From contig OZ251238.1 in the NCBI GenBank assembly GCA_965240325.2, positions 1 through 64,000 of the forward strand: a stretch of DNA of 64,000 nt. Reading direction: 5' to 3'. Shown in pieces: positions 38,032 to 59,000 of this stretch. This DNA is from Rebecca billardiae RCC1528 (lineage: Eukaryota > Protista > Haptophyta). Both the position numbers and the translations under genes were made by a program. Each line of letters opens with the position of its first letter. Position 1 is the stretch's first letter. Below the pieces are notes generated by a model. It made no database searches and was not told the origin of the DNA. It saw only the letters and a program-made list of their open reading frames with translations.

Positions 38032-41000
38032 ATGGAGCTCACGCTGGACGAGCAACGCGCCTCGCGCGGAGCCGCGCGCAGGCGAGGCGCTGCCGACCCG
38101 CGCGACGGCGGGAACGCCGCCGCACGCGCCCTCGACGCCGCAGCCCACCCGGGCGAGGCGTGGCCGCGGCTCATCGCCCCAGCCGCTGCGCCGCGCTCAG
38201 ACGCGGCCGCGTGCCGCCGGCCGCATCCGACGCGGCACGGCGGCGCGGCCGACGCCGCCCGCGTGGGCAGCCCGGCGCAGCCCGAGCGGGACAAGGCGGC
38301 CAGTGCGCGCGCCGCCCGCCCCCGCTCGCGGCCGGCGCCGTCCGCGCGCGGATCGGCGCGCTGGCTCCCGAGCGCGCTCGCGGCCGCGGCGCTGCTGCTC
38401 GGCTGCGCGCCGCGCGCGGCCGCGCAATCGACAGCGACGTGCACCGAGCTGCGCACGCTGTACGGCCTGTCCGACTCGTGGCAGCTCTCGGCCGCCGCGG
38501 GCTTCGAGCGCGTCTGCGGCGAGTCCCGCCACCCGTGGGGCACGGGCTTCAGCTCGTACGAGGCCATCACCAACTGGGACATCTGCCCCGCGTCCGTGTG
38601 GTTTGTGTGGCAGGACGCCAACACCGCGTGCACCGACATCGGCGCGCGGCTGTGCACGCAGGCGGAGGTCGAGGCGGACGTCGCGGCGAACGGCGACGGC
38701 CAGTGCGGCACGTACGACGGCACGCCGTGGGACCAGCACCGCTTCTGGACGAGCACGCAGTGCGGCAAGAACGCGGACAACCGGCGGCGCGTGCCGGGCG
38801 CGTCCGCGTACGCGGCCGAGGGCGCGCAGTGCAAGAACGGCGTGAGCGGCATCAACAACGCGGGGATCAAGTGCTGCGCCGACGAGCCCGCGCCGCCGCC
38901 CTCGCCGCCCGCGCCGCCGCCGAGCCCGCCGAGCCCGCCGCCCAGCCCGCCGCCCTCGCCCGCGCCGCCGCCGAGCCCGCCGCCCTCGCCCGCGCCGCCG
39001 CCGAGCCCGCCGCCGTCGCCGCCGCCGAGCCCACCGCCGTCACCGCCGCCGTCGCCGCCGCCGAGCCCGCCGCCGCAGCCGCCGGTGCCGCCGCCGCCCG
39101 TCCCGCCACCGTCGCCCCCGCCCGGCGCGCCGCCCGGCGCGCCGCCCAGCCCGCCGCCGAGCCCGCCGCCGAGCCCGCCGCCCTCGCCGCCGCCCTCGCC
39201 GCCGCCGCCCTCGCCGCCGCCCTCGCCGCCGCCCTCGCCGCCGCCCTCGCCACCACCCAGCCCGCCGAGCCCGCCGCCCTCGCCGCCGCAGGCGACGACG
39301 TCGTGCGCGACGCTGCAGTCCCTCTACGGCGGCTGGCCGCTCGCCTCCGACCCCGGCTTCGCGCTGGTGTGCGGCGAGAGCAACAACGGGCTCGACGGCT
39401 CGGGCGGCAGCCAGTGCTCGGGGCTGCGCGACCACAACTCCGCCATCGAGTTCTGCCAGCGCGTGAACGCGCGGCTGTGCACGTACCAGGAGCTGCAGGC
39501 TGACGTGGCGGCGAACACGGGGTGCGACCTCGAGAACGCGCGCGTGTGGACCAACCAGGCGTGCTCCAACCCCGCCGCCCCGGACGTGGACAACTTCTGG
39601 AGCGTGGGCGGCTCCAACGCGTCCACGCTGCCGCTGCGCTGCCGCACGTGGGACAAGACGTACAGCGTGCGCTGCTGCGCGGACGTGCTCGAGTCGCCGC
39701 CGCCGCCGCTGCCGCCGCCGAGCCCGCCGCCCACGCCGCCGCCCAGCCCGCCGCCCAGCCCGCCGCCGCCGCTGCCGCCGCCGTCGCCGCCGCCGAGCCC
39801 GCCGCCGAGCCCGCCGCCGTCGCCGCCGCCGAGCCCGCCGCCGTCGCCGCCGCCGTCGCCGCCGCCGAGCCCGCCGCCGGGCTCGCCACCGCACCCGCCG
39901 CCGAGCCCGCCGCCGAGCCCGCCGCCGGGCTCGCCACCGCACCCGCCGCCGTCGCCGCCGCCCGGCCAGCCGCCATCGCCGCCGCCGAGCCCGCCGCCGA
40001 GCCCGCCGCCGTCGCCGCCGCCGAGCCCGCCGCCCAGCCCGTCGCCGCAGCCGCCGCCGAGCCCGCCACCGTCGCCTCCGCCGAGCCCGCCGCCGTCGCC
40101 GCCGCCCGGCCAGCCGCCATCGCCGCCACCGAGCCCGCCGCCGAGCCCACCACCAAGCCCGCCGCCTTCGCCGCCGCCGTCGCCACCACCGAGCCCACCG
40201 CCGAGCCCGCCGCCAAGCCCGCCGCCCTCGCCGCCGCCGAGCCCGTCGCCGCAGCCACCGCCGAGCCCGCCGCCCGCCTCGCCGCCAAGCCCGCCGCCAT
40301 CGCCGCCGCCCAGCCCACCGCCGCCGTCGCCGCCGCCGAGCCCGCCGCCGAGCCCGCCGCCACGGCCGCCGCCCAGCCCGCCGCCGAGCCCGCCGCCCAG
40401 CCCGCCGCCCAGCCCGCCCCCGCCGGCTGTGGAGCCGTCGCCACCGCCCTCGCCGCCACCGCAGGCCCCGCCTTCTCCGCCGCCGAGCCCACCGCCGAGC
40501 CCACCGCCGGGCGCGCCGCCGGGCCCGCCGCCGAGCCCGCCACCGACCCCGCCGCCACCAGCGCCGCCTCCAAGCCCGCCTCCGTCTCCGCCGCCATCGC
40601 CACCGCCGTCGCCACCGCCGTCGCCTTTCCCGAGCCCTCCGCCGAGCCCACCGCCCCCGGGCGCGCCGCCAACGCCGCCTCCGTCGCCTCCCCCCGCGCA
40701 GCCTCCACGCCCACCGCCGTCACCCCCGCCGTCACCCCCGCCGTCGCCCCCGCCGTCGCCCCCGCCGTCGCCCCCGCCGTCGCCCCCGCCGTCGCCTCCG
40801 CCGACAGCCGCGCCGTCACCGCCGCCGTCGCCGCCACCAAGCCCGCCCCCTTCGCCGCCGCCGAGCCCACCGCCGCCCGACCCGCCACCCTCGCCGCCGC
40901 CTAGCCCGCCCCCTAGCCCGCCGCCGTGGCAGCCACCTTCGCCGCCGCCGAGCCCGCCCCCGTCGCCGCCGCCGTCGCCGCCACCGGCGGCATCGCCGCT

Positions 41001-44000
41001 GCCACCGCCGTCCCCGCCACCGCGGCCTCCGCCGAGCCCGCCTCCATCACCACCGCCCTCGCCACCGCCGAGCCCGCCGCCGAGCCCGCCTCCGTCGCCA
41101 CCGCCGTCGCCGCCACCGGCAGCCTCGCCGCTGCCACCACCGTCCCCGCCGCCGTCGTCGCCGCCGAGCCCGCCACCATCACCACCGCCCTCGCCGCCGC
41201 CCTCGCCGCCGCCCTCGCCGCCGCCGAGCCCGCCTCCGTCGCCACCGCCGTCGCCGCCACCGGCAGCCTCGCCGCTGCCACCGCCGTCCCCGCCGCCATC
41301 GCCGCCGCCGAGCCCGCCGCCATCACCACCGCCTTCGCCTCCTCCCAGCCCACCGCCGCCAGTCCCACCGCTCTCGCCGCCCCCTAGCCCTCCGCCCAGC
41401 CCGCCGCCGTCGCCACCGCCGGCGCCGCCACCGCCACCGAGGGCGCAGCCCTTCCCACCGCCGAGCCCACCTGCGCCGCCGCCCAGCCCTCCGCCGAGCC
41501 CGCCGCCTGTGCCGCCACCGAGCCCGCCACCGGCGTCACCTCCGCGGCCACCGCCCTCGCCACCGCCGAGTCCACCGCCGCCAGTCCCGCCGCCCTCACC
41601 TCCGCCGCAGCCACCGCCGAGCCCGCCACCGACGCAGCCGCCGTCCCCGCCACCCTCGCCGCCACCTTCGCCACCGCCGAGCCCGCCGCCGAGCCCGCCT
41701 CCGTCGCCACCGCCGTCGCCGCCACCGGCAGCCTCGCCGCTGCCACCGCCGAGCCCGCCGCCATCGCTGCCGCCGAGCCCGCCGCCATCACCACCGCCCT
41801 CGCCGCCGCCCTCGCCGCCGCCGAGCCCGCCTCCGTCGCCACCGCCGTCGCCGCCACCGGCAGCCTCGCCGCTGCCACCGCCGTTCCCGCCGCCATCGCC
41901 GCCGCCGAGCCCGCCGCCATCACCACCGCCTTCGCCTCCTCCGAGCCCACCGCCGCCAGTCCCACCGCCCTCGCCGCCCCCTAGCCCTCCGCCCAGCCCG
42001 CCGCCGTCGCCACCGCCGGCGCCGCCACCGCCACCGAGGGCGCAGCCCTTCCCACCGCCGAGCCCACCTGCGCCGCCGCCCAGCCCTCCGCCGAGCCCGC
42101 CGCCTGTGCCGCCACCGAGCCCGCCACCGGCGTCACCTCCGCGGCCACCGCCCTCGCCACCGCCAAGCCCACCGCCGCCAGTGCCGCCGCCGTCCCCTCC
42201 TCCACAGCCGCCGCCGAGCCCGCCACCGACGCAGCCGCCGTCCCCGCCGCCCTCGCCACCGCCTTCGCCGCCGCCGAGCCCGCCGCCGTCGCCGCCGCCA
42301 TCGCCACCACCGTCGCCGCCACCGGCAGCCTCGCCGCTGCCACCACCGTCCCCGCCGCCATCGCCACCGCCGAGCCCGCCACCATCACCACCGCCCTCGC
42401 CGCCGCCTTCGCCGCCGCCCTCGCCGCCGCCCTCGCCGCCGCCGAGCCCGCCTCCGTCGCCACCGCCCTCGCCGCCACCGGCAGCCTCGCCGCTGCCACC
42501 ACCGTCCCCGCCGCCATCGCCACCGCCGAGCCCGCCGCCATCACCACCGCCCTCGCTGCCGCCTTCGCCGCCGCCCTCGCCGCCGCCCTCGCCGCCGCCT
42601 TCGCCGCCGCCCTCGCCGCCGCCCTCGCCGCCGCCGAGCCCGCCTCCGTCGCCACCGCCCTCGCCGCCACCGGCAGCCTCGCCGCTGCCACCGCCGTCCC
42701 CGCCGCCATCGCCGCCGCCGAGCCCGCCGCCATCACCACCGTTCTCGCCGCCGCCTTCGCCGCCGCCCTCGCCGCCGCCCTCGCCGCCGCCGAGCCCACC
42801 TCCGTCGCCACCGCCGTCGCCGCCACCGGCAGCCTCGCCGCTGCCACCGCCGAGCCCGCCGCCATCGCTGCCGCCGAGCCCGCCGCCATCACCACCGCCC
42901 TCGCCGCCGCCCTCGCCGCCGCCGAGCCCGCCTCCGTCGCCACCGCCGTCGCCGCCACCGGCAGCCTCGCCGCTGCCACCGCCGTTCCCGCCGCCATCGC
43001 CGCCGCCGAGCCCGCCGCCATCACCACCGCCTTCGCCTCCTCCGAGCCCACCGCCGCCAGTCCCACCGCCCTCGCCGCCCCCTAGCCCTCCGCCCAGCCC
43101 GCCGCCGTCGCCACCGCCGGCACCGCCACCGCCACCGAGGGCGCAGCCCTTCCCACCGCCGAGCCCACCTGCGCCGCCGCCCAGCCCTCCGCCGAGCCCG
43201 CCGCCGCAGCCGCCGCCGAGCCCGCCACCGGCGTCACCTCCGCTGCCACCGCCCTCGCCACCGCCGAGCCCACCGCCGCCAGTGCCGCCGCCGTCCCCTC
43301 CTCCACAGCCGCCGCCGAGCCCGCCACCGACGCAGCCGCCGTCCCCGCCGCCCTCGCCACCGCCTTCGCCGCCGCCGAGCCCGCCTCCGTCGCCGCCGCC
43401 ATCGCCACCAACGTCGCCGCCACCGGCAGCCTCGCCGCTGCCACCACCGTCCCCGCCGCCATCGCCACCGCCGAGCCCGCCGCCATCACCACCGCCCTCG
43501 CCGCCACCTTCGCCGCCGCCGAGCCCGCCTCCATCGCCACCGCCGAGCCCGCCTCCGTCGCCACCGCCGTCGCCGCCACCGGCAGCGTCGCCGCTGCCAC
43601 CGCCGTCTCCGCCCCCATCGCCGCCGCCGAGCCCGCCGCCATCACCACCGCCTTCGCCTCCTCCGAGCCCACCGCCGCCAGTCCCACCGCCCTCGCCGCC
43701 CCCTAGCCCTCCGCCTAGCCCGCCGCCGTCGCCACCGCCGGCACCGCCACCGCCACCGAGGGCGCAGCCCTTCCCACCGCCGAGCCCACCTGCGCCGCCG
43801 CCCAGCCCTCCGCCGAGCCCGCCGCCGCAGCCGCCGCCGAGCCCGCCACCGGCGTCACCTCCGCTGCCACCGCCCTCGCCACCGCCGAGCCCACCGCCGC
43901 CAGTGCCGCCGCCGTCCCCTCCTCCACAGCCGCCGCCGAGCCCGCCACCGACGCAGCCGCCGTCCCCGCCGCCCTCGCCACCGCCTTCGCCGCCGCCGAG

Positions 44001-47000
44001 CCCGCCTCCGTCGCCGCCGCCGTCGCCGCCACCGGCAGCCTCGCCGTTGCCACCGCCGTCCCCGCCGCCATCGCCACCGCCGAGCCCGCCGCCATCACCA
44101 CCGCCCTCGCCGCCGCCCTCGCCGCCGCCCTCGCCGCCACCCTCGCCGCCGCCGAGCCCGCCTCCGTCGCCACCGCCGTCGCCGCCACCGGCAGCCTCGC
44201 CGTTGCCACCGCCGTCCCCGCCGCCATCGCCGCCGCCGAGCCCGCCGCCATCACCACCGCCTTCGCCTCCTCCAAGCCCACCGCCGCCAGTCCCACCGCC
44301 CTCACCGCCCCCTAGCCCTCCGCCCAGCCCGCCGCCGTCGCCACCGCCGGCACCGCCACCGCCACCGAGGGCGCAGCCCTTCCCACCGCCGAGCCCACCT
44401 GCGCCGCCGCCCAGCCCTCCGCCGAGCCCGCCGCCGCAGCCGCCGCCGAGCCCGCCACCGGCGTCACCTCCGCGGCCACCGCCCTCGCCACCGCCGAGCC
44501 CACCGCCGCCAGTGCCGCCGCCGTCCCCTCCTCCACAGCCGCCGCCGAGCCCGCCACCGACGCAGCCGCCGTCCCCGCCGCCCTCGCCACCGCCTTCGCC
44601 GCCGCCGAGCCCGCCTCCGTCGCCGCCGCCATCGCCACCACCGTCGCCGCCACCGGCAGCCTCGCCGCTGCCACCGCCGTCCCCGCCGCCATCGCCGCCG
44701 CCGAGCCCACCGCCATCACCGCCGCCCTCGCCGCCGCCCTCGCCGCCGCCGAGCCCGCCTCCGTCGCCACCGCCGTCGCCGCCACCGGCAGCCTCGCCGC
44801 TGCCACCGCCGTCCCCTCCGCCATCGCCGCCGCCGAGCCCGCCGCCATCACTACCGCCCTCGCCTCCTCCGAGCCCACCGCCAAGCCCGCCGCCATCGCC
44901 ACCGCCATCGCAGCCACCGGCGGCCTCGCCACTGCCGCCGCCCTCTCCGCCGCCTTCACCGCCGCCGAGCCCGTCACCATTGCCACCGCCCTCGCCGCCG
45001 CCCTCGCCGCCGCCCTCCCCGCCGCCAAGCCCACCGCCGAGCCCACTGCCGAGCCCGCCTCCGTCGCCACCACCGTCGCCACCACCGGCGGCCTCGCCGC
45101 TGCCGCCGCCCTCTCCGCCGCCTTCGCCGCCGCCCTCGCCGCCGCCCTCGCCGCCGCCCTCGCCGCCGCCCAGCCCAGTGCCCTCCCCGCCGCCATCGCC
45201 GCCGCCATCGCCGCCGCCCTCCCCGCCGCCCAGCCCACCGCCGAGCCCACCGCCGAGTCCGCCTCCGTCGCCGCCGCCGTCGCCACCGCCGGCCTCGCCA
45301 CTGCCGCCGCCCTCTCCGCCGCCTTCGTCTCCGCCGAGCCAGCCGCCCTCACCGCCGCCCTTGCCGCCGCCCTCGCCGCCGCCCTCGCTGCCGCCCTCGC
45401 CGCCTCCTCACCCGCCGCCCAGCCCACCGCCGAGCCCACCGCCGAGTCCGCCTCCGTCGCCGCCGCCGTCGCCACCGCCGGCCTCGCCACTGCCGCCGCC
45501 CTCTCCGCCGCCTTCACCGCCGCCGAGCCCGTCACCATTGCCACCGCCCTCGCCGCCGCCCTCGCCGCCGCCCTCCCCGCCGCCCAGCCCACCGCCGAGC
45601 CCACTGCCGAGCCCGCCTCCGTCGCCACCACCGTCGCCACCACCGGCGGCCTCGCCGCTGCCGCCGCCCTCTTCGCCGCCTTCGCCGCCGCCCTCGCCGC
45701 CGCCCTCGCCGCCGCCCTCGCCGCCGCCCAGCCCAGTGCCCTCCCCGCCGCCATCGCCGCCGCCATCGCCGCCGCCCTCCCCGCCGCCCAGCCCACCGCC
45801 GAGCCCACCGCCGAGTCCGCCTCCGTCGCCGCCGCCGTCGCCACCGCCGGCCTCGCCACTGCCGCCGCCCTCTCCGCCGCCTTCGTCTCCGCCGAGCCAG
45901 CCGCCCTCACCGCCGCCCTTGCCGCCGCCCTCGCCGCCGCCCTCGCTGCCGCCCTCGCCGCCTCCTCACCCGCCGCCCAGCCCACCGCCGAGCCCGCCTC
46001 CGTCGCCGCCGCCGTCGCCACCCCCGGCACCACCGCCGTCGCCGCCGCCGTCGCCGCCGCCTTTGCCGCCGCCGAGCCCGCCTCCATCACCACCGCCCTC
46101 GCCGCCACCGTCGCCGCTTCCCAGCCCGCCACCAAGCCCTCCGCCAACGCTGCCGCCGTCCCCTCCGCCCTCGCCACCGCCGTCTCCTCCGCCGAGCCCG
46201 CCGCCTTTGCCGCCGCCGCCCCGGCCACCGCCCTCCCCTCCTCCCAGCCCCCCACCAAGCCCGCCACCGTCGCCCCCTCCATCGCAGCCGCCGCAGCCAC
46301 CGCCCTCCCCACCGCCATCCCCACCGCCATCCTCGCCTCCTGCACCGCCGCCGCCACGCCCGCCGCCGTCGCCTCCTCCGTCCTTGCCACCATCCCCACC
46401 GCCGTCCCCGCCACCGTCAGCACCACCCGCGCCACCGCCAAGCCCACCGCCATCACCGCCACCTGCTCCGCAGCCGCCGTCTCCGCCGCCGTCGCCGCCG
46501 CCGAGCCCACCCCCTTCACCGCCGCCCAGCCCGCTGCCACCGCTCCCGCCGCCGTCGCCGCCGAGTCCGCCGCCGCCGCGCACGCTGCCATTCCCGCCGC
46601 CGTCGCCGCCGTCGCCGCCGCTTCCGCCGTTCGCGTTTGGCGCGGACGCGCTGGTCTCTGACGCGCAGATCACGCTGTACACGACGAGCAGCAGCCCGGG
46701 CGCGGCTGTGCACGGCACGGTCAGCAGCGCCGGCAACCGGCACAACTTGACGGTGGGCTTCTTGGCGGGCGCGTCTGCCGGCGCGTCCGGCACTGTGCGC
46801 GCCGCGTCGCACGGCATCGATCTCGGCGTGGCGAGCAGCTACAGCGTGACCGCCGAGCAGGCGGCGAGCGTGGAGTGCGCGGTGCGCACGCCGACGGCGT
46901 ACGCGGACCGCACAGGCGTGCGCGTCGCGTACCAGCTTCGCGATGCGGCGCACCGCTCGTCCGTGCTCACCACGGGTCTGAGCGTGAGCCTGACGCTGTC

Positions 47001-50000
47001 GCTGGTCGGCGGCTCCGACCAGAGCTTCTCGTGCGGCTCGCCGGGCGCGACGACGGGCGTGGGCGAGTGCTCGGCCACCGTGAGCGCGGGCTGGTTCAGC
47101 ACGGCCGCAGCGGGCAGTGTCGACGTGCTCGTCGAGTTCAACTACGGCGGCGGCACCGTCGGCTCGTGCTCTCGTGCGGGCGCGGTTACGCTCGCCGAGA
47201 GCCCGACCGCGTACACACTCCCGTCGGTCGGCCTGCTGGGCCAGATGGCGCAGTCGCCCGTGTTTGCGGGCGACAGCTTCGAGCTGGTGATGTACGCGCA
47301 CACGGGCGGCGTCGCGCTCATCACCTGGCAGATCAACATTGCGTACGACTCGAGCGTGCTCAGCGTCGCCAGCACGTCGGTCGCGAGCACGTACAACTCG
47401 CCGGAGGTGAGCGACAACGCGGCCGGCCTCGTGTCGATCATCGCGACGGGGCTCACCGGTGGCACGACCAACGCGCAGGTGACAGGCACGGCCGTGGAGC
47501 TGATCACGCTGACGATGAGCGTGGCAGGGGGCGCCTCCGCGGGCAGCTACGCCGGCGCCATCTCGGTCGAGATCGAGCAGTATGTGAACGACGCGACGCA
47601 GGTGTACGTGAGCGAGCAGGCGGGCGTGGTTGCCGACGCGGACGATGGCGCGTCAGCGAGCGGCACGCTCGTGGTGGAGACGGTGGCTGTGCAGGGCTGG
47701 CTCGCATACGTCGCCTCGGGCGAGCTGGTCAACACAGCGCCGCTCTCCGGCACCGACGTGACCACCGCGCTCAGCGTGCTTGAGCTGTACAGCCGCGCGG
47801 CCACTTCGTCTGCCACTCAGTCGAGCGGCTACTCGTGCCTCGCGCTCGACTCGAGCGTGCTCAGCACCAGCGCAGGGTCGCCGTGCACGGTGGTGGCGAG
47901 CAGCTCGAGCACGTCGGGCGCCGCGACGGCCCTCGTGAACGTGACGCGCGACTCGAGCGGCGCTGTGGTCGCGAGCGTGCCGCTGCGCGTGTGGCACCCG
48001 CTGTCCGCAGAGATCCGCTTTGGGCATGGCACGCTCTTCGCCATCAAGGGCGCGTCGCAGCCCGGCCAGTGTGGCACGCAGGCGTTCCAGTCGACGACGG
48101 CCAGCCTCGTCGCGTCGTTTGGAGGGTCGGACCTGAGCACGGTGAGCGACGTGGACGTGACGCGCGAGGCGACGCTCGCCTCGGGCGACGCCGGCGTCGC
48201 GAGCATCTCCACGTCCAGCACGACCGGCGTGGCGACGGTGGCGGGCGTGGGCGTCGGCTCGGCTGCTATCAGCGCATCCGGCTCGAGCCCGTCGATCTCG
48301 TCGACGATTGTGGTGTCGGCGGACGTGGAGCGCCGCATCGCATCGCTCCGGCCAGTGGCATTCAACTCGATCGCCTTCGTCGACTCGCCGTCGACGCTGA
48401 GTGTGGGCGCGACGAGCGGCTTCGATGCGTCGGCTGCTCTCGGGCAGACGCTCACAGCCGAAGGGCAGACGGTGAGCGTGTACACGTACGCGTACCTCGG
48501 CGACGGCTCGTACGAGCTCGTGCCGTCGACGGAGGTCACGCTGACGAGCCGCACGTCGAGTCTCACCGTCGCTGCACCCGGCGACGCATCGTCGCCGTGG
48601 ACGGCTACAGTGGCCACGTTTGCCACGTCGCAGGAGGGCCTGCTCCTCGACGCGAGCTGGATCGACTCGTGCAGCGCCGTGCTGGCAACGGGCCGCGCAC
48701 GCGTGGATCTGGAGTTGCCCAACGCGGTGAGCGTGGCAGTGAGCGCATCGGCCGACGAGGTGACAGTGCCGGGCGACCCTGCCGCAGAGCCGCCGACGTC
48801 GCTGCCCACGTCGCTCACCGTCACGATCACGGTCACGTTTGAAGACGAGTCGCAGGTGGACTTCACCACCGACCCGCGCACCAACATCACACTCTCGGTG
48901 CCGTCGTCGTGCGCCACGTTCGACGGCGTGAACCAGGTGACGATGACGAGCGGCGCGACGTGCACTGCTCTCAACGTGACCGTCTTTGTCGACTCGTACC
49001 TCCTGAGCGGCTTCGTCGAGGTGCCGGTCGTGACGGCTGCTGGCGCGTCATTCGAGATCACGCTCGAGGACGACACGCTCGGGCTGATCGGCGCGTCCGC
49101 CACGTTCCAGCGCACGGCCACGACGCCATCGGCCACGCTGAGCGACGGTACGGTGGTCTCTCCTACGCTGCTGGCTGCTGAGATGGTGCTGGCGTCGAAC
49201 GACACGCTCGTTGCGACCACGTCAGGCAGCACTGTCATCGGCGTGGGCGCTGGCGTTGCGCTCATCAACGCGACGTGGGGCACGCTCACAGCGTCAGCCA
49301 CCGTCTACGTCGACGCGACTGCGGTGAAGGTGACGGCGCTGACGCTGGGCCTGGGCGGCTTGACGTCTGGCGCGTCGCTGCTTGCCAGCAACGGCACGTC
49401 GAGCACGCTGAGCGCGCTCGTCACGCTCGAGGACGGCGTGCAGTACACCAACCTGATGTCGCTGGGGTACGTGAGCGTGTCAGAGGTGCTCAGCTTCGAG
49501 AGCGACGACGCGGCCGTGCTCGGCGTCGACCCGAACGGTGGGGTGACAATCGCTGGCAACAGTCGCGACTCGGCAAACACGATCACAGCGACGTCGCTCG
49601 ATGCTGGCGCGGTCGCAGACGCCCTCGACGTGACGGCGAACCTGCAGCCTGGCACGCACGACGTGGACCTCGGCTCGGCGAGCGGACTGCAGCTCCAGCA
49701 GTCGGGCAACTCTCTCACAGTGCCAGTGCGCGTGAACACGGGCGGCAGCTCGGAGTACCTGGTCAACTTCCAGATCGAGCTGGCCATCGACAGCGCTGTC
49801 CTGGTCGCGACGTCGTGCAGCACGCTCTCGTGGGCCGAGTGCACGATCAACGACCCGCTCAACGAGGTCAGGTTTGTGGGCAACACGGCGTCACAAATCA
49901 CCAGCGGCACTGCCGCCTCGATCGGCTCCGTCACGTTCGACGTGCTGTCCTCGGCGAGCACGTCGCTGACGGGAAGCATCGTCGAGCTCGTGACAGTGCA

Positions 50001-53000
50001 GGGTGCGACAGAGACGCGCGTGCAGAACGCCGACATCTTCGCGGGCGCAGGCGGCCTCACGACGACCGTCAGCCGGCGGCGCGCGCTCGCGCTGGCAGCT
50101 GAGTACGTTCCGCCCCTGTTCGTGCCGACCGAGCCGAGCCGGGCGGCGCGCGCGCGGCGGCTGGCGGAGTGCTCGGGCTGCTCCGCTGCCATCGTCGGCG
50201 ACGTGAATGGCGACTGCGCCCTGACCTCATTTGACGTGCGCGTGCTCTCGCAGTTCGTCATCGGCGTGTCCGGGCTGACGACGTGCACATCCGCGCTCGA
50301 CCCGACGCTGGACAACAGCACGGGTGCGCAGGATGTGCAGTACCAGCTGCGCGCGGTCGCGGGCAAGTACCGCTTCCTGACGAGCTACAGCATCACGTCG
50401 GGCGCCATCGGCGTCGGCACGAGCGAGCCGCTCGTTGCGTCCGTCGTCGTGACGAAGGACGACAACACAGTCGCCGACGACAGCCAGACGAGCGTCTTCT
50501 TCGAGATCGGAGTGGCAGCTGCGTCGCACACGCCCGTGTACGTGAACGGCACGGACAACGGCACCTCTGCCGAGGGCTTCTGGGTGGGGCGCGGCGAGTA
50601 CACCAACGGCGTGTTCAGCGTTGGAGTGTACCCGAGCGGCGGGTGGCCGCAGGCGCTCAGCGGGTCGCTGGGTGTTGCTGTGATGATCGAGACGACGGAC
50701 GCGCTGGGGAACGGCGCTGACGACCGCAAGTTCCCGTTCCTCGGCTCGTCCGCGCAGTTCTACGCCGACTTCCTGTACACGTTCAGCCCGCTGCTCTCGA
50801 CAGCGGTGATCGGGCCTCCGCTGCCACCGCCACCGCTGCCGCCGCCGTCGCCGCCGCCTCCGGCGCCACCGCCGAGCCCGCCGCCTCCAGCGCCGCCGCC
50901 CACCCCACCTCCCCTGCCACCGCCTACGCCGCCGCCTTCACCGCCACCTTCGCCGCCTCCATCGCCGCCGCCGCTGCCGCCGGTTCCGCCCCCTTCGCCG
51001 CCGCCGCTGCCGCCGCCATCGCCTCCGCCATCCCCGCCGCCGTCGCCTCCCCCTGCCCCGGCTCCGCCGCCCAGCCCACCGCCCACCCCGCCACCGTCCC
51101 CGCCGCCGCGGCCAGCGCCACCCCCGTCCCCGCCGCCTGCCCCGCCGCCTTCGCCGCCGCCGTCGCAGCCGCCATCGCCGCCGCCGTCGCCACCACCGTC
51201 TCCGCCACCATCTCCGCCGCCAAGCCAGCCGCCCAGCCCACCGCCTAGCCCGCCGCCGTCACCACCACCAGCGCCCTCGCCGCTGCCACCGCCATCTCCG
51301 CCGCCGCGGCCGCCGCCGAGCCCGCCGCCATCGCCACCGCCCTCGCCGCCCCCCTCGCCGCCGCCCTCGCCGCCGCCCTCGCCGCCGCCGAGCCCACCGC
51401 CGTCGCCGCCGCCGTCGCCACCACCAGCGCCGCGGCCGCCGCCAAGCCCGCCGCCATCACCACCGCCCTCGCCGCCGCCGTCGCCGCCGCCCTCGCCGCC
51501 GCCGAGCCCGCCTCCGTCGCCACCGCCGTCGCCGCCACCGGCAGCCTCGCCGCTGCCACCACCGTCTCCGCCACCGTCGCCGCCACCGAGCCCGCCGCCA
51601 TCACCACCGCCCTCGCCGCCGCCCTCGCCGCCGCCCTCTCGGCCGCCCTCGCCGCCGCCGAGCCCGCCGCCATCGCCGCCGCCGAACCCGCCGCCATCGC
51701 CACCGCCTTCGCCGCCGCCCTCTCCGCCGCCGAGCCCGCCTCCGTCGCCACCGCCGTCGCCGCCACCGGCAGCCTCGCCGCTGCCACCACCGTCGCCGCC
51801 GCCATCGCCGCCACCGAGCCCGCCGCCATCACCACCGCCTTCGCCGCCGCCCTCTCCGCCGCCCTCGCCGCCGCCGAGCCCGCCTCCGTCGCCACCGCCA
51901 TCGCCGCCACCAGCAGCCTCGCCGCTGCCGCCGCCGTCGCCGCCGCCATCGCCGCCGCCGAGCCCGCCGCCATCACCGCCGCCCTCCCCGCCGCCCTCGC
52001 CGCCGCCGAGCCCGCCTCCGTCGCCACCGCCGTCGCCGCCGCCCTCTCCGCCGCCGAGCCCGCCTCCGTCGCCACCGCCGTCGCCGCCACCGGCAGCCTC
52101 GCCGCTGCCGCCACCGTCGCCGCCGCCATCGCCGCCGCCGAACCAGCCGCCATCACCACCGCCTTCGCCGCCGCCCTCTCCGCCGCCGAGCCCGCCTCCG
52201 TCGCCACCGCCGTCGCCGCCACCGGCAGCCTCGCCGCTGCCACCACCGTCGCCGCCGCCATCGCCGCCGCCGAGCCAGCCGCCATCACCACCGCCTTCGC
52301 CGCCGCCCTCTCCGCCGCCGAGCCCGCCTCCGTCGCCACCGCCGTCGCCGCCACCGGCAGCCTCGCCGCTGCCACCGCCTTTGCCGCCGCCCTCTCCGCC
52401 GCCGAGCCCGCCTCCGTCGCCACCGCCGTCGCCGCCACCGGCAGCCTCGCCGCTGCCACCACCGTCGCCGCCGCCATCGCCGCCACCGAGCCCGCCGCCA
52501 TCACCACCGCCTTCGCCGCCGCCCTCTCCGCCGCCGAGCCCGCCTCCGTCGCCACCGCCATCGCCGCCACCGGCAGCCTCGCCGCTGCCACCACCGTCCC
52601 CGCCGCCATCGCCGCCGCCGAGCCAGCCGCCATCACCACCGCCTTCGCCGCCGCCCTCTCCGCCGCCGAGCCCGCCTCCGTCGCCACCGCCGTCGCCGCC
52701 ACCGGCAGCCTCGCCGCTGCCACCACCGTCGCCGCCGCCATCACCACCGCCTTCGCCGCCGCCCTCCCCGCCGCCCTCGCCGCCGCCGAGCCCGCCTCCG
52801 TCGCCACCGCCATCGCCGCCACCGGCAGCCTCGCCGCTGCCACCGCCGTCGCCGCCGCCATCGCCGCCGCCGAGCCCGCCGCCATCACCACCGCCTTCGC
52901 CGCCGCCCTCTCCGCCGCCGAGCCCGCCTCCGTCGCCACCGCCGTCGCCGCCACCGGCAGCCTCGCCGCTGCCACCACCGTCGCCGCCGCCATCGCCGCC

Positions 53001-56000
53001 GCCGAGCCCGCCGCCATCACCACCGCCTTCGCCGCCGCCCTCCCCGCCGCCCTCGCCGCCGCCGAGCCCGCCTCCGTCTCCACCGCCATCGCCGCCACCG
53101 GCAGCCTCGCCGCTGCCACCACCGTCGCCGCCGCCATCGCCGCCGCCGAGCCCGCCGCCATCACCACCGCCTTCGCCGCCGCCCTCCCCGCCGCCCTCGC
53201 CGCCGCCGAGCCCGCCTCCGTCGCCACCGCCGTCGCCGCCACCGGCAGCCTCGCCGCTTCCACCACCGTCCCCGCCGCCGTCGCCGCCGCCGAGCCCGCC
53301 GCCATCACCACCGCCTTCGCCTCCTCCGAGCCCACCGCCGCCAGTCCCACCGCCCTCGCCGCCCCCTAGCCCTCCGCCCAGCCCGCCGCCGTCGCCACCG
53401 CCGGCACCGCCACCGCCACCGAGGGCGCAGCCCTTCCCACCGCCGAGCCCACCTGCGCCGCCGCCCAGCCCTCCGCCGAGCCCGCCGCCGCAGCCGCCGC
53501 CGAGCCCGCCCCCGGTGTCACCTCCGCTGCCACCGCCCTCGCCACCGCCCAGCCCACCGCCGCCGGCGCCGCCGCCGTCCCCTCCTCCACAGCCGCCGCC
53601 GAGCCCGCCACCGACGCAGCCGCCGTCCCCGCCACCCTCGCCGCCACCTTCGCCGCCGCCCAGCCCGCCTCCGACGCCACCGCCATCGCCACCACCGTCG
53701 CCGCCACCGGCAGCCTCGCCGCTGCCACCACCGTCTCCGCCGCCGTCGCCGCCGCCGAGCCCGCCGCCATCACCACCGCCTTCGCCGCCGCCCTCCCCGC
53801 CGCCCTCGCTGCCGCCGAGCCCGCCTCCGTCGCCACCGCCGTCGCCGCCACCGGCAGCCTCGCCGCTGCCACCGCCGTCGCCGCCGCCATCGCCGCCGCC
53901 GAGCCCGCCGCCATCACCACCGCCTTCGCCGCCGCCCTCCCCGCCGCCCTCGCCGCCGCCGAGCCCGCCTCCGTCGCCACCACCATCGCCGCCACCGGCA
54001 GCCTCGCCGCTTCCACCACCGTCGCCGCCGCCATCGCCGCCGCCGAGCCCGCCTCCGTCGCCACCGCCATCGCCGCCACCGGCAGCCTCGCCGCTGCCAC
54101 CACCGTCCCCGCCGCCATCGCCGCCGCCGAGCCAGCCGCCATCACCACCGCCTTCGCCGCCGCCCTCTCCGCCGCCGAGCCCGCCTCCGTCGCCACCGGA
54201 TTCGCCGCCACCGGCAGCCTCGCCGCTGCCACCACCGTCGCCGCCGCCATCGCCGCCGCCGAGCCCGCCGCCATCACCACCGCCTTCGCCGCCGCCCTCC
54301 CCGCCGCCCTCGCCGCCGCCGAGCCCGCCTCCGTCTCCACCGCCATCGCCGCCACCGGCAGCCTCGCCGCTGCCACCACCGTCGCCGCCGCCATCGCCGC
54401 CGCCGAGCCCGCCGCCATCACCACCGCCTTCGCCTCCTCCGAGCCCACCGCCGCCAGTCCCACCGCCCTCGCCGCCCCCTAGCCCTCCGCCCAGCCCGCC
54501 GCCGTCGCCACCGCCGGCACCGCCACCGCCACCGAGGGCGCAGCCCTTCCCACCGCCGAGCCCACCTGCGCCGCCGCCCAGCCCTCCGCCGAGCCCGCCG
54601 CCGCAGCCGCCGCCGAGCCCGCCCCCGGTGTCACCTCCGCTGCCACCGCCCTCGCCACCGCCCAGCCCACCGCCGCCGGCGCCGCCGCCGTCCCCTCCTC
54701 CACAGCCGCCGCCGAGCCCGCCACCGACGCAGCCGCCGTCCCCGCCACCCTCGCCGCCACCTTCGCCGCCGCCCAGCCCGCCTCCGACGCCACCGCCATC
54801 GCCACCACCGTCGCCGCCACCGGCAGCCTCGCCGCTGCCACCACCGTCTCCGCCGCCGTCGCCGCCGCCGAGCCCGCCGCCATCACCACCGCCTTCGCCG
54901 CCGCCCTCCCCGCCGCCCTCGCCGCCGCCGAGCCCGCCTCCGTCGCCACCGCCATCGCCGCCACCGGCAGCCTCGCCGCTTCCACCACCGTCGCCGCCGC
55001 CATCGCCGCCGCCGAGCCCGCCGCCATCACCACCGCCCTCGTCGCCGCCCTCTCGGCCGCCCTCGCCGCCGCCGAGCCCGCCTCCGTCGCCACCGCCATC
55101 GCCGCCACCGGCAGCCTCACCGCTGCCACCGCCGTCCCCGCCGCCGTCGCCGCCACCGAGCCCGCCGCCATCACCACCGCCTTCGCCGCCGCCCTCCCCG
55201 CCGCCCTCGCCGCCGCCGAGCCCGCCTCCGTCGCCACCGCCGTCGCCGCCACCGGCAGCCTCGCCGCTGCCACCGCCGTCCCCGCCGCCGTCGCCGCCGC
55301 CGAGCCCGCCGCCATCACCACCGCCTTCGCCTCCTCCGAGCCCACCGCCGCCAGTCCCACCGCCCTCGCCGCCCCCTAGCCCTCCGCCCAGCCCGCCGCC
55401 GTCACCACCGCCGGCACCGCCACCGCCACCGAGGGCGCAGCCCTTCCCACCGCCGAGCCCACCTGCGCCGCCGCCCAGCCCTCCGCCGAGCCCGCCGCCG
55501 CAGCCGCCGCCGAGCCCGCCCCCGGCGTTACCTCCGCTGCCACCGCCCTCGCCACCGCCGAGCCCACCGCCGCCGGCGCCGCCGCCGTCCCCTCCTCCAC
55601 AGCCGCCGCCGAGCCCGCCTCCGTCGCCGCCGCCATCGCCACCACCGTCGCCGCCACCGGCAGCCTCGCCGCTGCCACCACCGTCTCCGCCGCCGTCGCC
55701 GCCGCCGAGCCCGCCGCCATCACCACCGCCTTCGCCGCCGCCCTCTCCGCCGCCCTCGCCGCCGCCGAGCCCGCCTCCGTCGCCACCGCCGTCGCCGCCA
55801 CCGGCAGCCTCGCCGCTGCCACCGCCGTCGCCGCCGCCATCGCCGCCGCCGAGCCCGCCGCCATCACCACCGCCTTCGCCTCCTCCGAGCCCACCGCCGC
55901 CAGTCACACCGCCCTCGCCGCCCCCTAGCCCTCCGCCTAGCCCGCCGCCGTGGCCACCGCCGGCACCGCCACCGCCACCGAGGGCGCAGCCCTTCCCACC

Positions 56001-59000
56001 GCCGAGCCCACCTGCGCCGCCGCCCAGCCCTCCGCCGAGCCCGCCGCCGCAGCCGCCGCCGAGCCCGCCCCCGGTGTCACCTCCGCTGCCACCGCCCTCG
56101 CCACCGCCCAGCCCACCGCCGCCGGCGCCGCCGCCGTCCCCTCCTCCACAGCCGCCGCCGAGCCCGCCACCGACGCAGCCGCCGTCCCCGCCACCCTCGC
56201 CGCCACCTTCGCCGCCGCCCAGCCCGCCTCCGACGCCACCGCCATCGCCACCACCGTCGCCGCCACCGGCAGCCTCGCCGCTGCCACCACCGTCTCCGCC
56301 GCCGTCGCCGCCGCCGAGCCCGCCGCCATCACCACCGCCTTCGCCGCCGCCCTCCCCCGCCGCCCTCGCCGCCGCCGAGCCCGCCTCCGTCGCCACCGCC
56401 ATCGCCGCCACCGGCAGCCTCGCCGCTTCCACCACCGTCGCCGCCGCCATCGCCGCCGCCGAGCCCGCCGCCATCACCACCGCCCTCGTCGCCGCCCTCT
56501 CGGCCGCCCTCGCCGCCGCCGAGCCCGCCTCCGTCGCCACCGCCATCGCCGCCACCGGCAGCCTCACCGCTGCCACCGCCGTCCCCGCCGCCGTCGCCGC
56601 CGCCGAGCCCGCCGCCATCACCACCGCCTTCGCCGCCGCCCCTCCCCGCCGCCCTCGCCGCCGCCGAGCCCGCCTCCGTCGCCACCGCCGTCGCCGCCAC
56701 CGGCAGCCTCGCCGCTGCCACCGCCGTCCCCGCCGCCGTCGCCGCCGCCGAGCCCGCCGCCATCACCACCGCCTTCGCCTCCTCCGAGCCCACCGCCGCC
56801 AGTCCCACCGCCCTCGCCGCCCCCTAGCCCTCCGCCCAGCCCGCCGCCGTCACCACCGCCGGCACCGCCACCGCCACCGAGGGCGCAGCCCTTCCCACCG
56901 CCGAGCCCACCTGCGCCGCCGCCCAGCCCTCCGCCGAGCCCGCCGCCGCAGCCGCCGCCGAGCCCGCCCCCGGCGTTACCTCCGCTGCCACCGCCCTCGC
57001 CACCGCCGAGCCCACCGCCGCCGGCGCCGCCGCCGTCCCCTCCTCCACAGCCGCCGCCGAGCCCGCCTCCGTCGCCGCCGCCATCGCCACCACCGTCGCC
57101 GCCACCGGCAGCCTCGCCGCTGCCACCACCGTCTCCGCCGCCGTCGCCGCCGCCGAGCCCGCCGCCATCACCACCGCCTTCGCCGCCGCCCTCCCCGCCG
57201 CCCTCGCCGCCGCCGAGCCCGCCTCCGTCGCCACCGCCGTCGCCGCCACCGGCAGTCTCGCCGCTGCCACCGCCGTCGCCGCCGCCATCGCCGCCGCCGA
57301 GCCCGCCGCCATCACCACCGCCTTCGCCGCCGCCCTCCCCGCCGCCCTCGCCGCCGCCGAGCCCGCCTCCGTCGCCACCGCCGTCGCCGGCACCGGCAGC
57401 CTCGCCGCTGCCACCGCCGTCATCGCCGCCGCCGAGCCCGCCGCCATCACCACCGCCTTCGCCGCCGCCCTCTCCGCCGCCGAGCCCGCCTCCGTCGCCA
57501 CCGCCGTCGCCGCCACCGGCAGCCTCGCCGCTGCCACCACCGTCGCCGCCGCCATCGCCGCCGCCGAGCCCGCCGCCATCACCACCGCCTTCGCCGCCGC
57601 CCTCCCCGCCGCCCTCGCCGCCGCCGAGCCCGCCTCCGTCTCCACCGCCATCGCCGCCACCGGCAGCCTCGCCGCTGCCACCACCGTCGCCGCCGCCATC
57701 GCCGCCGCCGAGCCCGCCGCCATCACCACCGCCTTCGCCGCCGCCCTCCCCGCCGCCCTCGCCGCCGCCGAGCCCGCCTCCGTCGCCACCGCCGTCGCCG
57801 CCACCGGCAGCCTCGCCGCTTCCACCACCGTCCCCGCCGCCGTCGCCGCCGCCGAGCCCGCCGCCATCACCACCGCCTTCGCCTCCTCCGAGCCCACCGC
57901 CGCCAGTCCCATCGCCCTCGCCGCCCCCTAGCCCTCCGCCCAGCCCGCCGCCGTCGCCACCGCCGGCACCGCCACCGCCACCGAGGGCGCAGCCCTTCCC
58001 ACCGCCGAGCCCACCTGCGCCGCCGCCCAGCCCTCCGCCGAGCCCGCCGCCGCAGCCGCCGCCGAGCCCGCCCCCGGTGTCACCTCCGCTGCCACCGCCC
58101 TCGCCACCGCCCAGCCCACCGCCGCCGGCGCCGCCGCCGTCCCCTCCTCCACAGCCGCCGCCGAGCCCGCCACCGACGCAGCCGCCGTCCCCGCCACCCT
58201 CGCCGCCACCTTCGCCGCCGCCCAGCCCGCCTCCGACGCCACCGCCATCGCCACCACCGTCGCCGCCACCGGCAGCCTCGCCGCTGCCACCACCGTCTCC
58301 GCCGCCGTCGCCGCCGCCGAGCCCGCCGCCATCACCACCGCCTTCGCCGCCGCCCTCTCCGCCGCCCTCGCCGCCGCCGAGCCCGCCTCCGTCGCCACCG
58401 CCGTCGCCGCCACCGGCAGCCTCGCCGCTGCCACCGCCGTCGCCGCCGCCATCGCCGCCGCCGAGCCCGCCGCCATCACCACCGCCTTCGCCGCCGCCCT
58501 CCCCGCCGCCCTCGCTGCCGCCGAGCCCGCCTCCGTCGCCACCGCCGTCGCCGCCACCGGCAGCCTCGCCGCTGCCACCGCCGTCGCCGCCGCCATCGCC
58601 GCCGCCGAGCCCGCCGCCATCACCACCGCCTTCGCCGCCGCCCTCCCCGCCGCCCTCGCCGCCGCCGAGCCCGCCTCCGTCGCCACCACCATCGCCGCCA
58701 CCGGCAGCCTCGCCGCTTCCACCACCGTCGCCGCCGCCATCGCCGCCGCCGAGCCCGCCTCCGTCGCCACCGCCATCGCCGCCACCGGCAGCCTCGCCGC
58801 TGCCACCACCGTCCCCGCCGCCATCGCCGCCGCCGAGCCAGCCGCCATCACCACCGCCTTCGCCGCCGCCCTCTCCGCCGCCGAGCCCGCCTCCGTCGCC
58901 ACCGCCGTCGCCGCCACCGGCAGCCTCGCCGCTGCCACCACCGTCGCCGCCGCCATCGCCGCCGCCGAGCCCGCCGCCATCACCACCGCCTTCGCCGCCG

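Follow-up and report, generated by a model that had tools for sequence, protein, structure and literature searches.

A conserved cassette within a giant open reading frame

The first 64,000 nucleotides of contig OZ251238.1 (assembly GCA_965240325.2) of the haptophyte Rebecca billardiae RCC1528, referred to here as the window, contain a giant open reading frame in which a stop-free, non-repetitive translation of 1394 residues (positions 46630-50811, the insert) lies between long rods of Ser-Pro-Pro-Pro (SPPP) repeats. The insert includes two cohesins and one dockerin together with an ectodomain of the TMEM132 type. Along the frame there are, in this order, a hydrophobic stretch, two Cys-rich domains, Ser-Pro3 repeats, the 1394-residue insert, and Ser-Pro3 repeats again. 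The frame is free of stops from 37684 to the end of the window, which amounts to 8772 codons. Since the GC content is about 80%, the open frame alone proves little, and the coding nature of the insert rests on conservation and homology; coding support by homology covers 46630-50811 only.

The translation of 47212-50811 was used as a HMMER query against 1.84 billion cluster representatives. The search identified 685 representatives at E <= 1e-3, 155 of them at E <= 1e-30, and many matches spanned query residues 3-1196 as a single unit. Relatives were found in the haptophytes Diacronema lutheri (42% identity), Pavlovales sp. CCMP2436, Prymnesium parvum, and Chrysotila carterae, in the green algae Cymbomonas tetramitiformis (a prasinophyte) and Mesostigma viride, in one MMETSP transcript, and in many marine metagenome contigs. 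The names given to these relatives in the databases are hypothetical protein or "TMEM132 fourth domain-containing" protein only. The insert had no match when it was compared with the PDB sequences by single-sequence phmmer or with NCBIfam, and full-text searches returned, from the library searched, no paper linking dockerins with haptophytes or other algae in this sense.

The insert is one copy of a conserved extracellular cassette of ~1,400 residues, which consists of a TMEM132-type ectodomain, two immunoglobulin (Ig)-like domains, and a fixed trio formed by cohesin-2, the dockerin, and a beta-sandwich. Only one cassette was detected within the window by a profile search of ~8,700 codons. The original prediction, which was made from the nucleotide sequence, had placed the cohesins and the dockerin within one very long Pro-rich protein, and the position of the insert between SPPP rods agrees with it. 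Pro-rich stretches of more than 100 residues were present in only 4 of 150 homologues; either the embedding in thousands of SPPP units is thus a peculiarity of this genome, or other assemblies and gene models have lost it. In one relative, P0172, the cassette is combined with a CAP domain (PF00188).

The TMEM132-type half

Two regions of the insert were modelled with AlphaFold2. The second of the models covers the first 734 residues (46630-48831), was built from 59 sequences, and reached a predicted local distance difference test score (pLDDT) of 93.3 and a predicted template modelling score (pTM) of 0.84. When it was compared with the Swiss-Prot models by Foldseek, the top 13 matches were all TMEM132A-E proteins, from human, mouse, rat, zebrafish, and C. 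elegans, with E values between 1.7e-34 and 2.5e-32 and template modelling (TM) scores of 0.51-0.53. The next family was found at E 5e-15 and TM 0.16. The alignments with TMEM132 started at query residue 1 or 14, extended to ~700, and covered target residues ~40-800. At the sequence level, the Pfam family Ig_TMEM132_4th was matched by the window copy (Table 1) and by 55 of 59 homologues, Ig_TMEM132_5th by five homologues, and the 6th by two. According to the model, 46630-48831 is a complete TMEM132-type ectodomain with its N-terminal region, its cohesin, and three Ig domains. Between this region and cohesin-2, the A2 Ig profile matched again at nucleotides ~48937-49347 (independent E value, iE, 3.3e-6). 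The domains that the original prediction had recognized in the insert, described below, were confirmed, but the TMEM132-type ectodomain had been missed.

Two cohesins and a dockerin

The fold of both cohesins was assessed by structural comparison using VIA-align. Cohesin-1, which occupies the position of the TMEM132 cohesin, aligned over 128-137 of its ~140 residues with Z scores of 11.4-14.4 and root mean square deviations (rmsd) of 2.1-3.0 Å, and the top 32 rows were all cohesins. The values for cohesin-2 were Z 10.5-13.0 and rmsd 2.5-3.5 Å (5.2 Å for 2xdh) over ~125-130 of 140 residues, with cohesins in all of the top 28 rows; its Foldseek TM scores normalized by target were 0.55-0.65. The first cohesin proposed at ~47230-47680 thus corresponds to a domain modelled at 47221-47685 with Z up to 14.4, and the cohesin-like domain proposed at ~49700-50070 to one modelled at 49651-50073 with Z up to 13.0.

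Sequence comparisons of the window copy with Pfam Cohesin (PF00963) gave an E value of 4.2e-4 for cohesin-1 (21.0 bits, cutoff 24.1) and no match for cohesin-2. The family was matched by 17 of 59 cohesin-1 homologues (best E 1.5e-7) and by 11 of 39 cohesin-2 homologues (best E 9.7e-8), all taken from alignments at 26-51% identity to the window. As the window copy of cohesin-2 has no Pfam match, homologue profiles and structure were needed for its assignment. The profiles of the two cohesins cross-matched, with iE values of 8.5e-5 and 3.4e-4. Taken with the models, these comparisons indicate that cohesin-1 and cohesin-2 are both genuine cohesins.

The dockerin follows cohesin-2 and starts with a CxxC lead-in, after which GDVNGDC is found at 50197-50217. 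Its two 12-residue calcium loops, D-V-N-G-D-C-A-L-T-S-F-D (loop 1, 50200-50235) and D-P-T-L-D-N-S-T-G-A-Q-D (loop 2, 50299-50334), carry Asp at positions 1, 5, and 12 and correspond to residues 191-202 and 224-235 of the 394-residue module 49630-50811. In the AlphaFold2 model, helices 200-210 and 233-243 each begin at position 10 of the respective loop. The residues at the ligand positions follow the type I calcium pattern (D, N, D, D in loop 1 and D, T, D, D in loop 2), and Thr at position 3 of loop 2 is the family norm (21/39). G190, D191, D202, and D235 do not vary across the alignment of 39 sequences, 36 of which also have D195. Pfam Dockerin_1 (PF00404) on the window copy alone remained below threshold (E 0.027, 15.1 bits vs 22.9), and seven of the 39 homologues matched it (best E 1.1e-5). 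A profile made from the 39 homologues matched both repeats of solved type I dockerins: 4fl4_A at 2.6e-7, 2ccl_B at 2.1e-6, and 1daq_A at 1.5e-5. Judged by these sequence comparisons, the dockerin is genuine and of the two-loop calcium type, with calcium binding as a prediction.

The duplicated 12-residue loop and helix with Asp at positions 1, 5, and 12, which had been taken for a dockerin from the letters alone, was therefore identified as such by the family profile (E 2.6e-7). Likewise, the proposed check of the insert by Pfam and AlphaFold led to predicted cohesin folds, and to support for the dockerin through the homologue profile.

The family dockerin also has conserved extra Cys residues (C181, C184, C196, and C219 in the module). 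They form a CxxC or Cx4-8C lead-in and include a Cys after helix 1, and position 6 of loop 1 is Cys in 29 of 39 copies and Gly in eight. From lineage to lineage, the numbers of Cys residues change together, suggesting that the dockerin has one or two disulfide staples.

A fixed trio of cohesin-2, dockerin, and beta-sandwich

The module 49630-50811 was modelled from alignment A1, which consists of 39 homologous C-terminal modules at 26-51% identity to the window. The AlphaFold2 model of the trio (394 residues) has a pLDDT of 91.4 and a pTM of 0.90. A pTM of this level over three domains predicts that the dockerin sits at a set position, with cohesin-2 on one side and the C-terminal sandwich on the other.

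The composition of the family was determined in 150 representatives, which contained 165 copies of cohesin-2, 135 dockerins, 140 copies of cohesin-1, and 113 C-terminal domains. A dockerin was present within 150 residues in 130 of 143 complete copies of cohesin-2; the other copies are 22 at truncated ends and 13 that have no dockerin, five of these in P0005. Conversely, only 2-5 of the 135 dockerins have no preceding cohesin. This 1:1 adjacency of cohesin-2 and dockerin looks like that of a cis unit and not like that of freely combining modules. The original prediction had anticipated a conserved order of cohesin, RxRR, and dockerin in homologues. The adjacency of cohesin-2 and dockerin was indeed found in 130 of 143 copies, but RxRR was not conserved with it, as described below.

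The trio was also compared as a rigid body with bacterial cohesin-dockerin proteins from the ESM Atlas and AlphaFold DB clusters. The TM scores were 0.2-0.47; the search aligned mainly the cohesin and says nothing about binding in cis or in trans.

The linker and its paired RR-x-L motifs

The linker was taken from the alignment as the columns that follow cohesin-2, up to the opening Gly-Asp of loop 1, and its length across the family is 42-73 residues. It is enriched in Arg about twofold when compared with the module (0.106 vs 0.052). In the window copy, it holds three of the five dibasic positions of the 1394-residue insert and both of its RR(x)L motifs, there being no others. One of them (site A) is located at the exit of cohesin-2 and the other one (site B) shortly before the dockerin, and the spacer that separates them is variable both in its length and in its sequence. 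Model residues 160-180, around site B, have pLDDT values of 52-54 and are the sole low-confidence stretch of the trio model.

The basic sites SRRRAL and RARR had been noticed before, and both are present exactly where they were placed, with SRRR at 50071-50082 and RARR at 50149-50160. RARR fits the furin consensus in the window copy, but this consensus is not conserved. The strict pattern R-x-[KR]-R was found at site A in 3 of 39 and at site B in 7 of 39 homologues, while composition-preserving shuffles gave 1.9-2.1, and a furin site was rejected as a feature of the family. The pattern RR.?L was found at site A in 23/39 and at site B also in 23/39 (shuffles, 2.5 +/- 1.5 and 2.9 +/- 1.6), and R.L in 28/39 and 31/39, respectively (shuffles, ~10-11). 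In a logo of 32-33 sites, which is descriptive only because it was anchored by a regular expression, R occupies P4 in 20-25 sites and P3 in 28-30, P2 is variable, and P1 is Leu, Met, or Val, with L in 24-29. The conserved signal is therefore a pair of RR-x-L motifs around a spacer that is predicted to be exposed and disposable, and the furin consensus of the window copy is incidental.

In sequence, the RR-x-L motifs look like processing sites of the secretory pathway that are cut after Leu. If they were cut in this manner, the new N-terminus would more likely be AECSGC than LAECSGC. Proteins of diatom biosilica lose an RXL domain that ends in RRL by the action of an unknown protease (PMC5525289). 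In Toxoplasma, a constrained RRL motif is cleaved by ASP5, an aspartyl protease of the Golgi (PMC4764566), and in plants, the RR/RRLL sites in the precursors of RALF are targets of the subtilase S1P (PMC9933782). The three sets of motifs share R-R-x-L in secreted proteins, with Arg at P4 and P3 and Leu at P1. In contrast with the linker motifs, they are located near the N-termini or in the pro-peptides of unrelated proteins from other lineages, and P2 in the cassette is not hydrophobic. They are precedents by analogy and not evidence for this alga.

Table 1. Features of the giant open reading frame and of the cassette (all on the forward strand; domain names follow the models and profiles described in the text)
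Feature	Positions	Strand	Remarks
Giant open reading frame	38032..63999	+	The first ATG in frame is at 38032; continues beyond the window
Hydrophobic signal-peptide-like stretch	38362..38430	+	Ends AAA-QS; read from the translation
Cys-rich globular domain 1	38434..38883	+	Before the first Pro rod; no Pfam match
N-terminal SPPP rods, with Cys-rich domain 2 between	38884..46629	+	SPPP repeats with a strong C skew; GC 0.81-0.84
Cys-rich globular domain 2	39295..39687	+	Paralogue of domain 1 by eye; no Pfam match
N-terminal beta domains of the TMEM132-type ectodomain	46630..47220	+	Equivalent to the TMEM132 region before its cohesin
Cohesin-1 (TMEM132 cohesin position)	47221..47685	+	Residues 198-352 of the second model
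Ig domain, Pfam Ig_TMEM132_4th	47707..48000	+	E 2.5e-9, 37.4 bits vs cutoff 27
Two Ig domains, counterparts of TMEM132 5th and 6th	48001..48831	+	Foldseek alignment reaches ~700
Extra Ig-like domains before cohesin-2	48832..49629	+	Based on sequence profile
Cohesin-2	49651..50073	+	Residues 8-148 of the trio model
Site A, RRAL within SRRRAL	50074..50085	+	Exit of cohesin-2
Variable spacer	50086..50148	+	Mostly low model confidence; sequence not conserved
Site B, RARRL	50149..50163	+	Furin-type RARR and family-conserved RRL; from the alignment
Dockerin (CxxC lead-in, Ca loop 1, helix, Ca loop 2, helix)	50170..50365	+	Family profile and model
C-terminal beta-sandwich, always after the dockerin	50374..50811	+	AlphaFold2 strands 249-392, pLDDT mostly >90
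C-terminal SPPP rod	50812..63999	+	SPPP repeats to the window end

A processed clasp as the proposed function

We propose that the trio is a cis clasp of the calcium type, in which the RR-x-L loop is processed and the two resulting chains, each with long polyproline rods, are held together non-covalently. We give this proposal an even chance. In the model, the trio would be one compact body with the dockerin held in cis, most likely on cohesin-2, and the exposed loop of 42-73 residues that joins the two domains would carry the pair of RR-x-L motifs. Cutting or excision of this loop in the secretory pathway would generate two chains. The first one would comprise lectin-like heads, a rod, the TMEM132 half, and cohesin-2, and the second one the dockerin, the sandwich, and a rod. 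By analogy with the bacterial pairs, the sole connection between these chains would be a cohesin-dockerin clasp that depends on calcium and is mechanically strong. Within the cell covering, this clasp could act as a joint at which a very long fibre of polyproline can break. Left with no partner in cis, cohesin-1 would be free for another ligand, as in animal TMEM132.

This mode of action is known from other proteins. In the heterodimerization domain of Notch, which is cut at S1, as well as in SEA and GAIN domains, an exposed loop is cut during secretion and the chains stay joined non-covalently. The association in Notch is calcium-dependent and constitutes a force-sensitive link; Notch is cut by furin, and SEA and GAIN domains are self-cutting. 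The proposed mode is alike, with cleavage inferred in our case, and the folds are unrelated. The forces that a clasp of this kind could bear may be considerable, as rupture forces of >120 pN are quoted for bacterial cohesin-dockerin pairs (PMC6030884).

Several observations weigh against a processed clasp. Site A lies at the start of modelled helix 149-158, where the pLDDT is ~77-90, and may be structural rather than accessible. The high pTM of the model is a prediction of fixed packing, not of a canonical cohesin-dockerin interface. In loop 2 of the dockerin, position 3 is Thr and position 6 is Asn, and calcium binding there is assumed. Furthermore, loop 2 of the Cymbomonas clade (P0011, P0016, P0019, P0028, P0030, and P0072 in alignment A1) carries an insertion of 15-20 residues with two extra Cys between positions 6 and 12, and thus the canonical 12-residue geometry is lost in this green-algal clade, where the flanking Asp residues are kept. 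Two more points concern the gene as a whole. Before the signal-like stretch, the frame has a single ATG, which is ~110 Arg/Ala-rich codons away; translation may begin on a 5' exon, or the stretch may be something other than a cleaved signal peptide. In addition, the C-terminal SPPP repeat shifts frame by +1 at ~56351 and again at ~56640.

The location of site A inside a helix and the compact packing of the trio at high confidence would also be expected if the chain were not cut at all. The trio would then be a static head stabilized by calcium, and the RR-x-L motifs would serve in folding contacts, in the binding of anionic polysaccharide or mineral, or in sorting. The conserved extra Cys residues, suggestive of a structural dockerin stapled by disulfides, fit this explanation, as does the common occurrence of non-cellulosomal dockerins and cohesins in bacteria; among the Atlas clusters, the nearest consist of small bacterial cohesin/dockerin proteins. 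However, a motif that is kept twice around a variable, low-confidence spacer is typical of processing sites, and the linker is richer in Arg (0.106) than the module (0.052). We consider an uncut chain possible but rather unlikely.

The original prediction had proposed that the cleaved chains could re-dock or give rise to a branched mesh controlled by calcium. In the mesh, the dockerin would detach from its chain after cleavage and bind cohesin-1 or cohesin-2 of other molecules, so that the rods polymerize. The 150 representatives contain 305 cohesins and 135 dockerins, so one cohesin is always spare; moreover, cohesin-1 and cohesin-2 are recognizably related (iE 8.5e-5 and 3.4e-4), the linker has conserved cleavage-like motifs, and some relatives, such as P0005 with five, have cohesin-2 copies lacking a dockerin. 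These features would suit a mesh, but the prediction of cohesin-2, dockerin, and sandwich as one rigid body (pTM 0.90) and their adjacency at 1:1 and in fixed order (130/143), unlike the free combinations of cellulosomes, would not, and a single cassette in 8,700 codons would give it a low valency. The compact prediction and the near-obligate adjacency favour a clasp in cis over a free mesh, which we regard as unlikely.

That the gene is non-functional, i.e., a subtelomeric pseudogene or an assembly chimera in which the cassette is a relic, is very improbable: its start ~36 kb from the telomere and behind an 11.5-kb satellite, the shifts of the SPPP frame at ~56351 and ~56640, and the lack of a Met adjoining the signal-like segment could be read in this way, but all of the 1394 insert codons are open, the family-invariant G190, D191, D202, and D235 and the Cys pattern are all kept, the AlphaFold2 confidence is 91-93, and both shifts are located in C runs of the repeat, as is typical of homopolymer miscounts.

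Comparison with known systems

The cohesin-dockerin interaction is the high-affinity and very force-resistant glue of bacterial cellulosomes. The cellulosomal type I pair of C. thermocellum (1ohz, 2ccl, and 4fl4) has the same cohesin beta-sandwich as the cassette (Z 11-14), and its dockerin has the same duplicated 12-residue calcium loop followed by a helix. In contrast to the cellulosome, the host of the cassette is a eukaryote, there is no scaffoldin logic, and cohesin and dockerin are found on one chain in fixed order. The dockerin differs from those of cellulosomes by its conserved Cys residues, among them Cys for Gly at position 6 of loop 1, and by Thr at position 3 of loop 2. Searches with Pfam and NCBIfam detected no enzyme and no carbohydrate-binding module in the insert. 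Since enzymes are missing, the cassette is not a cellulosome, and the description of the protein as a cellulosome-like scaffold could not be sustained.

Closer counterparts are found outside the cellulosome. Cohesin and dockerin modules that share a polypeptide but belong to no cellulosome were reportedly described by Peer et al. in 2009 (cited in PMC6030884). The Atlas clusters that came nearest (0.93) hold small bacterial proteins in which a dockerin comes directly after the cohesin, as in the trio, and the cohesin of A. fulgidus (2xdh) aligns with the cassette cohesins at Z 11.1-12.5. These bacterial and archaeal proteins are different in that they have ~200-280 residues and no TMEM132 cassette, and none of them matched the whole trio (TM 0.2-0.47).

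The rods resemble those of extensin-type hydroxyproline-rich glycoproteins. As read from the translation, thousands of Ser-Pro3 units flank the cassette, like the Ser-Pro(3-4) arrays of these proteins; unlike in extensins, Tyr cross-link motifs were not seen in the rods of the window.

Animal TMEM132A-E have the same ordered ectodomain as the N-terminal half of the cassette. The TMEM132 transmembrane helix and the tail with WIRS and PP1 motifs were not found; what comes after the third Ig domain are further Ig domains, the trio, and the SPPP repeats. Eukaryotic cohesins were thought to be restricted to choanoflagellates, sponges, and animals, TMEM132-like regions are also part of cadherins of choanoflagellates and sponges, and the origin of the architecture was placed in holozoans (PMC6030884). 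In contrast with this scope, haptophytes, one prasinophyte, and Mesostigma have the same ectodomain, accompanied by a dockerin. The ligand of the TMEM132 cohesin is unknown, and no dockerin is detectable in vertebrates (PMC6030884). The presence of a dockerin beside the same ectodomain in algae bears on this question.

A more speculative extension, which we consider doubtful, is that the algal cassette represents the ancestral state of TMEM132. The dockerin of the same protein would then be the native ligand of the TMEM132-type cohesin, and excision of the loop would produce, in the cell covering, a calcium-dependent joint that bears force and opens reversibly, or a polymerizing link by domain swapping. 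If this were true, the orphan cohesin of human TMEM132 would gain a concrete class of partner, and the cassette would provide the first example of a eukaryotic cohesin-dockerin system that has a function. A conserved eukaryotic pair in cis, placed within a TMEM132-type ectodomain and with a probable processing loop, would by itself be a new use of these domains, as a structural joint and not as a dock for enzymes. The 394-residue module 49630-50811, for which a high-confidence model is available, is a directly testable unit.

Setting of the locus

The window is a chromosome end. An array of CCCTAA (TTAGGG-type) telomere repeats extends up to ~1630 and is followed by 59 copies of a 194-bp satellite, at 94% identity, between 2060 and 13562 (~11.5 kb). 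The giant gene begins ~24 kb inward of the satellite, and the rest of the window is GC-rich (68-84%).

Both +1 shifts of the C-terminal rod (56345-56365 and 56635-56655) are located in C runs of an otherwise seamless repeat, CCCTCCCCCGCC and GCCCCTCCCCGCC, respectively. Miscounted homopolymers in the assembly may account for them, or the shifts may be real; the original frame stays open past them only because of the GC content.

Near the beginning of the frame, the two Cys-rich globular domains flank the first Pro rod. The nearest Atlas clusters of domain 1 are haptophyte hypothetical proteins (0.90), and Lcl_C and DUF7495 clusters at 0.81-0.86 are leads only. From their sequences, the two domains may constitute a lectin-like, carbohydrate-binding head.

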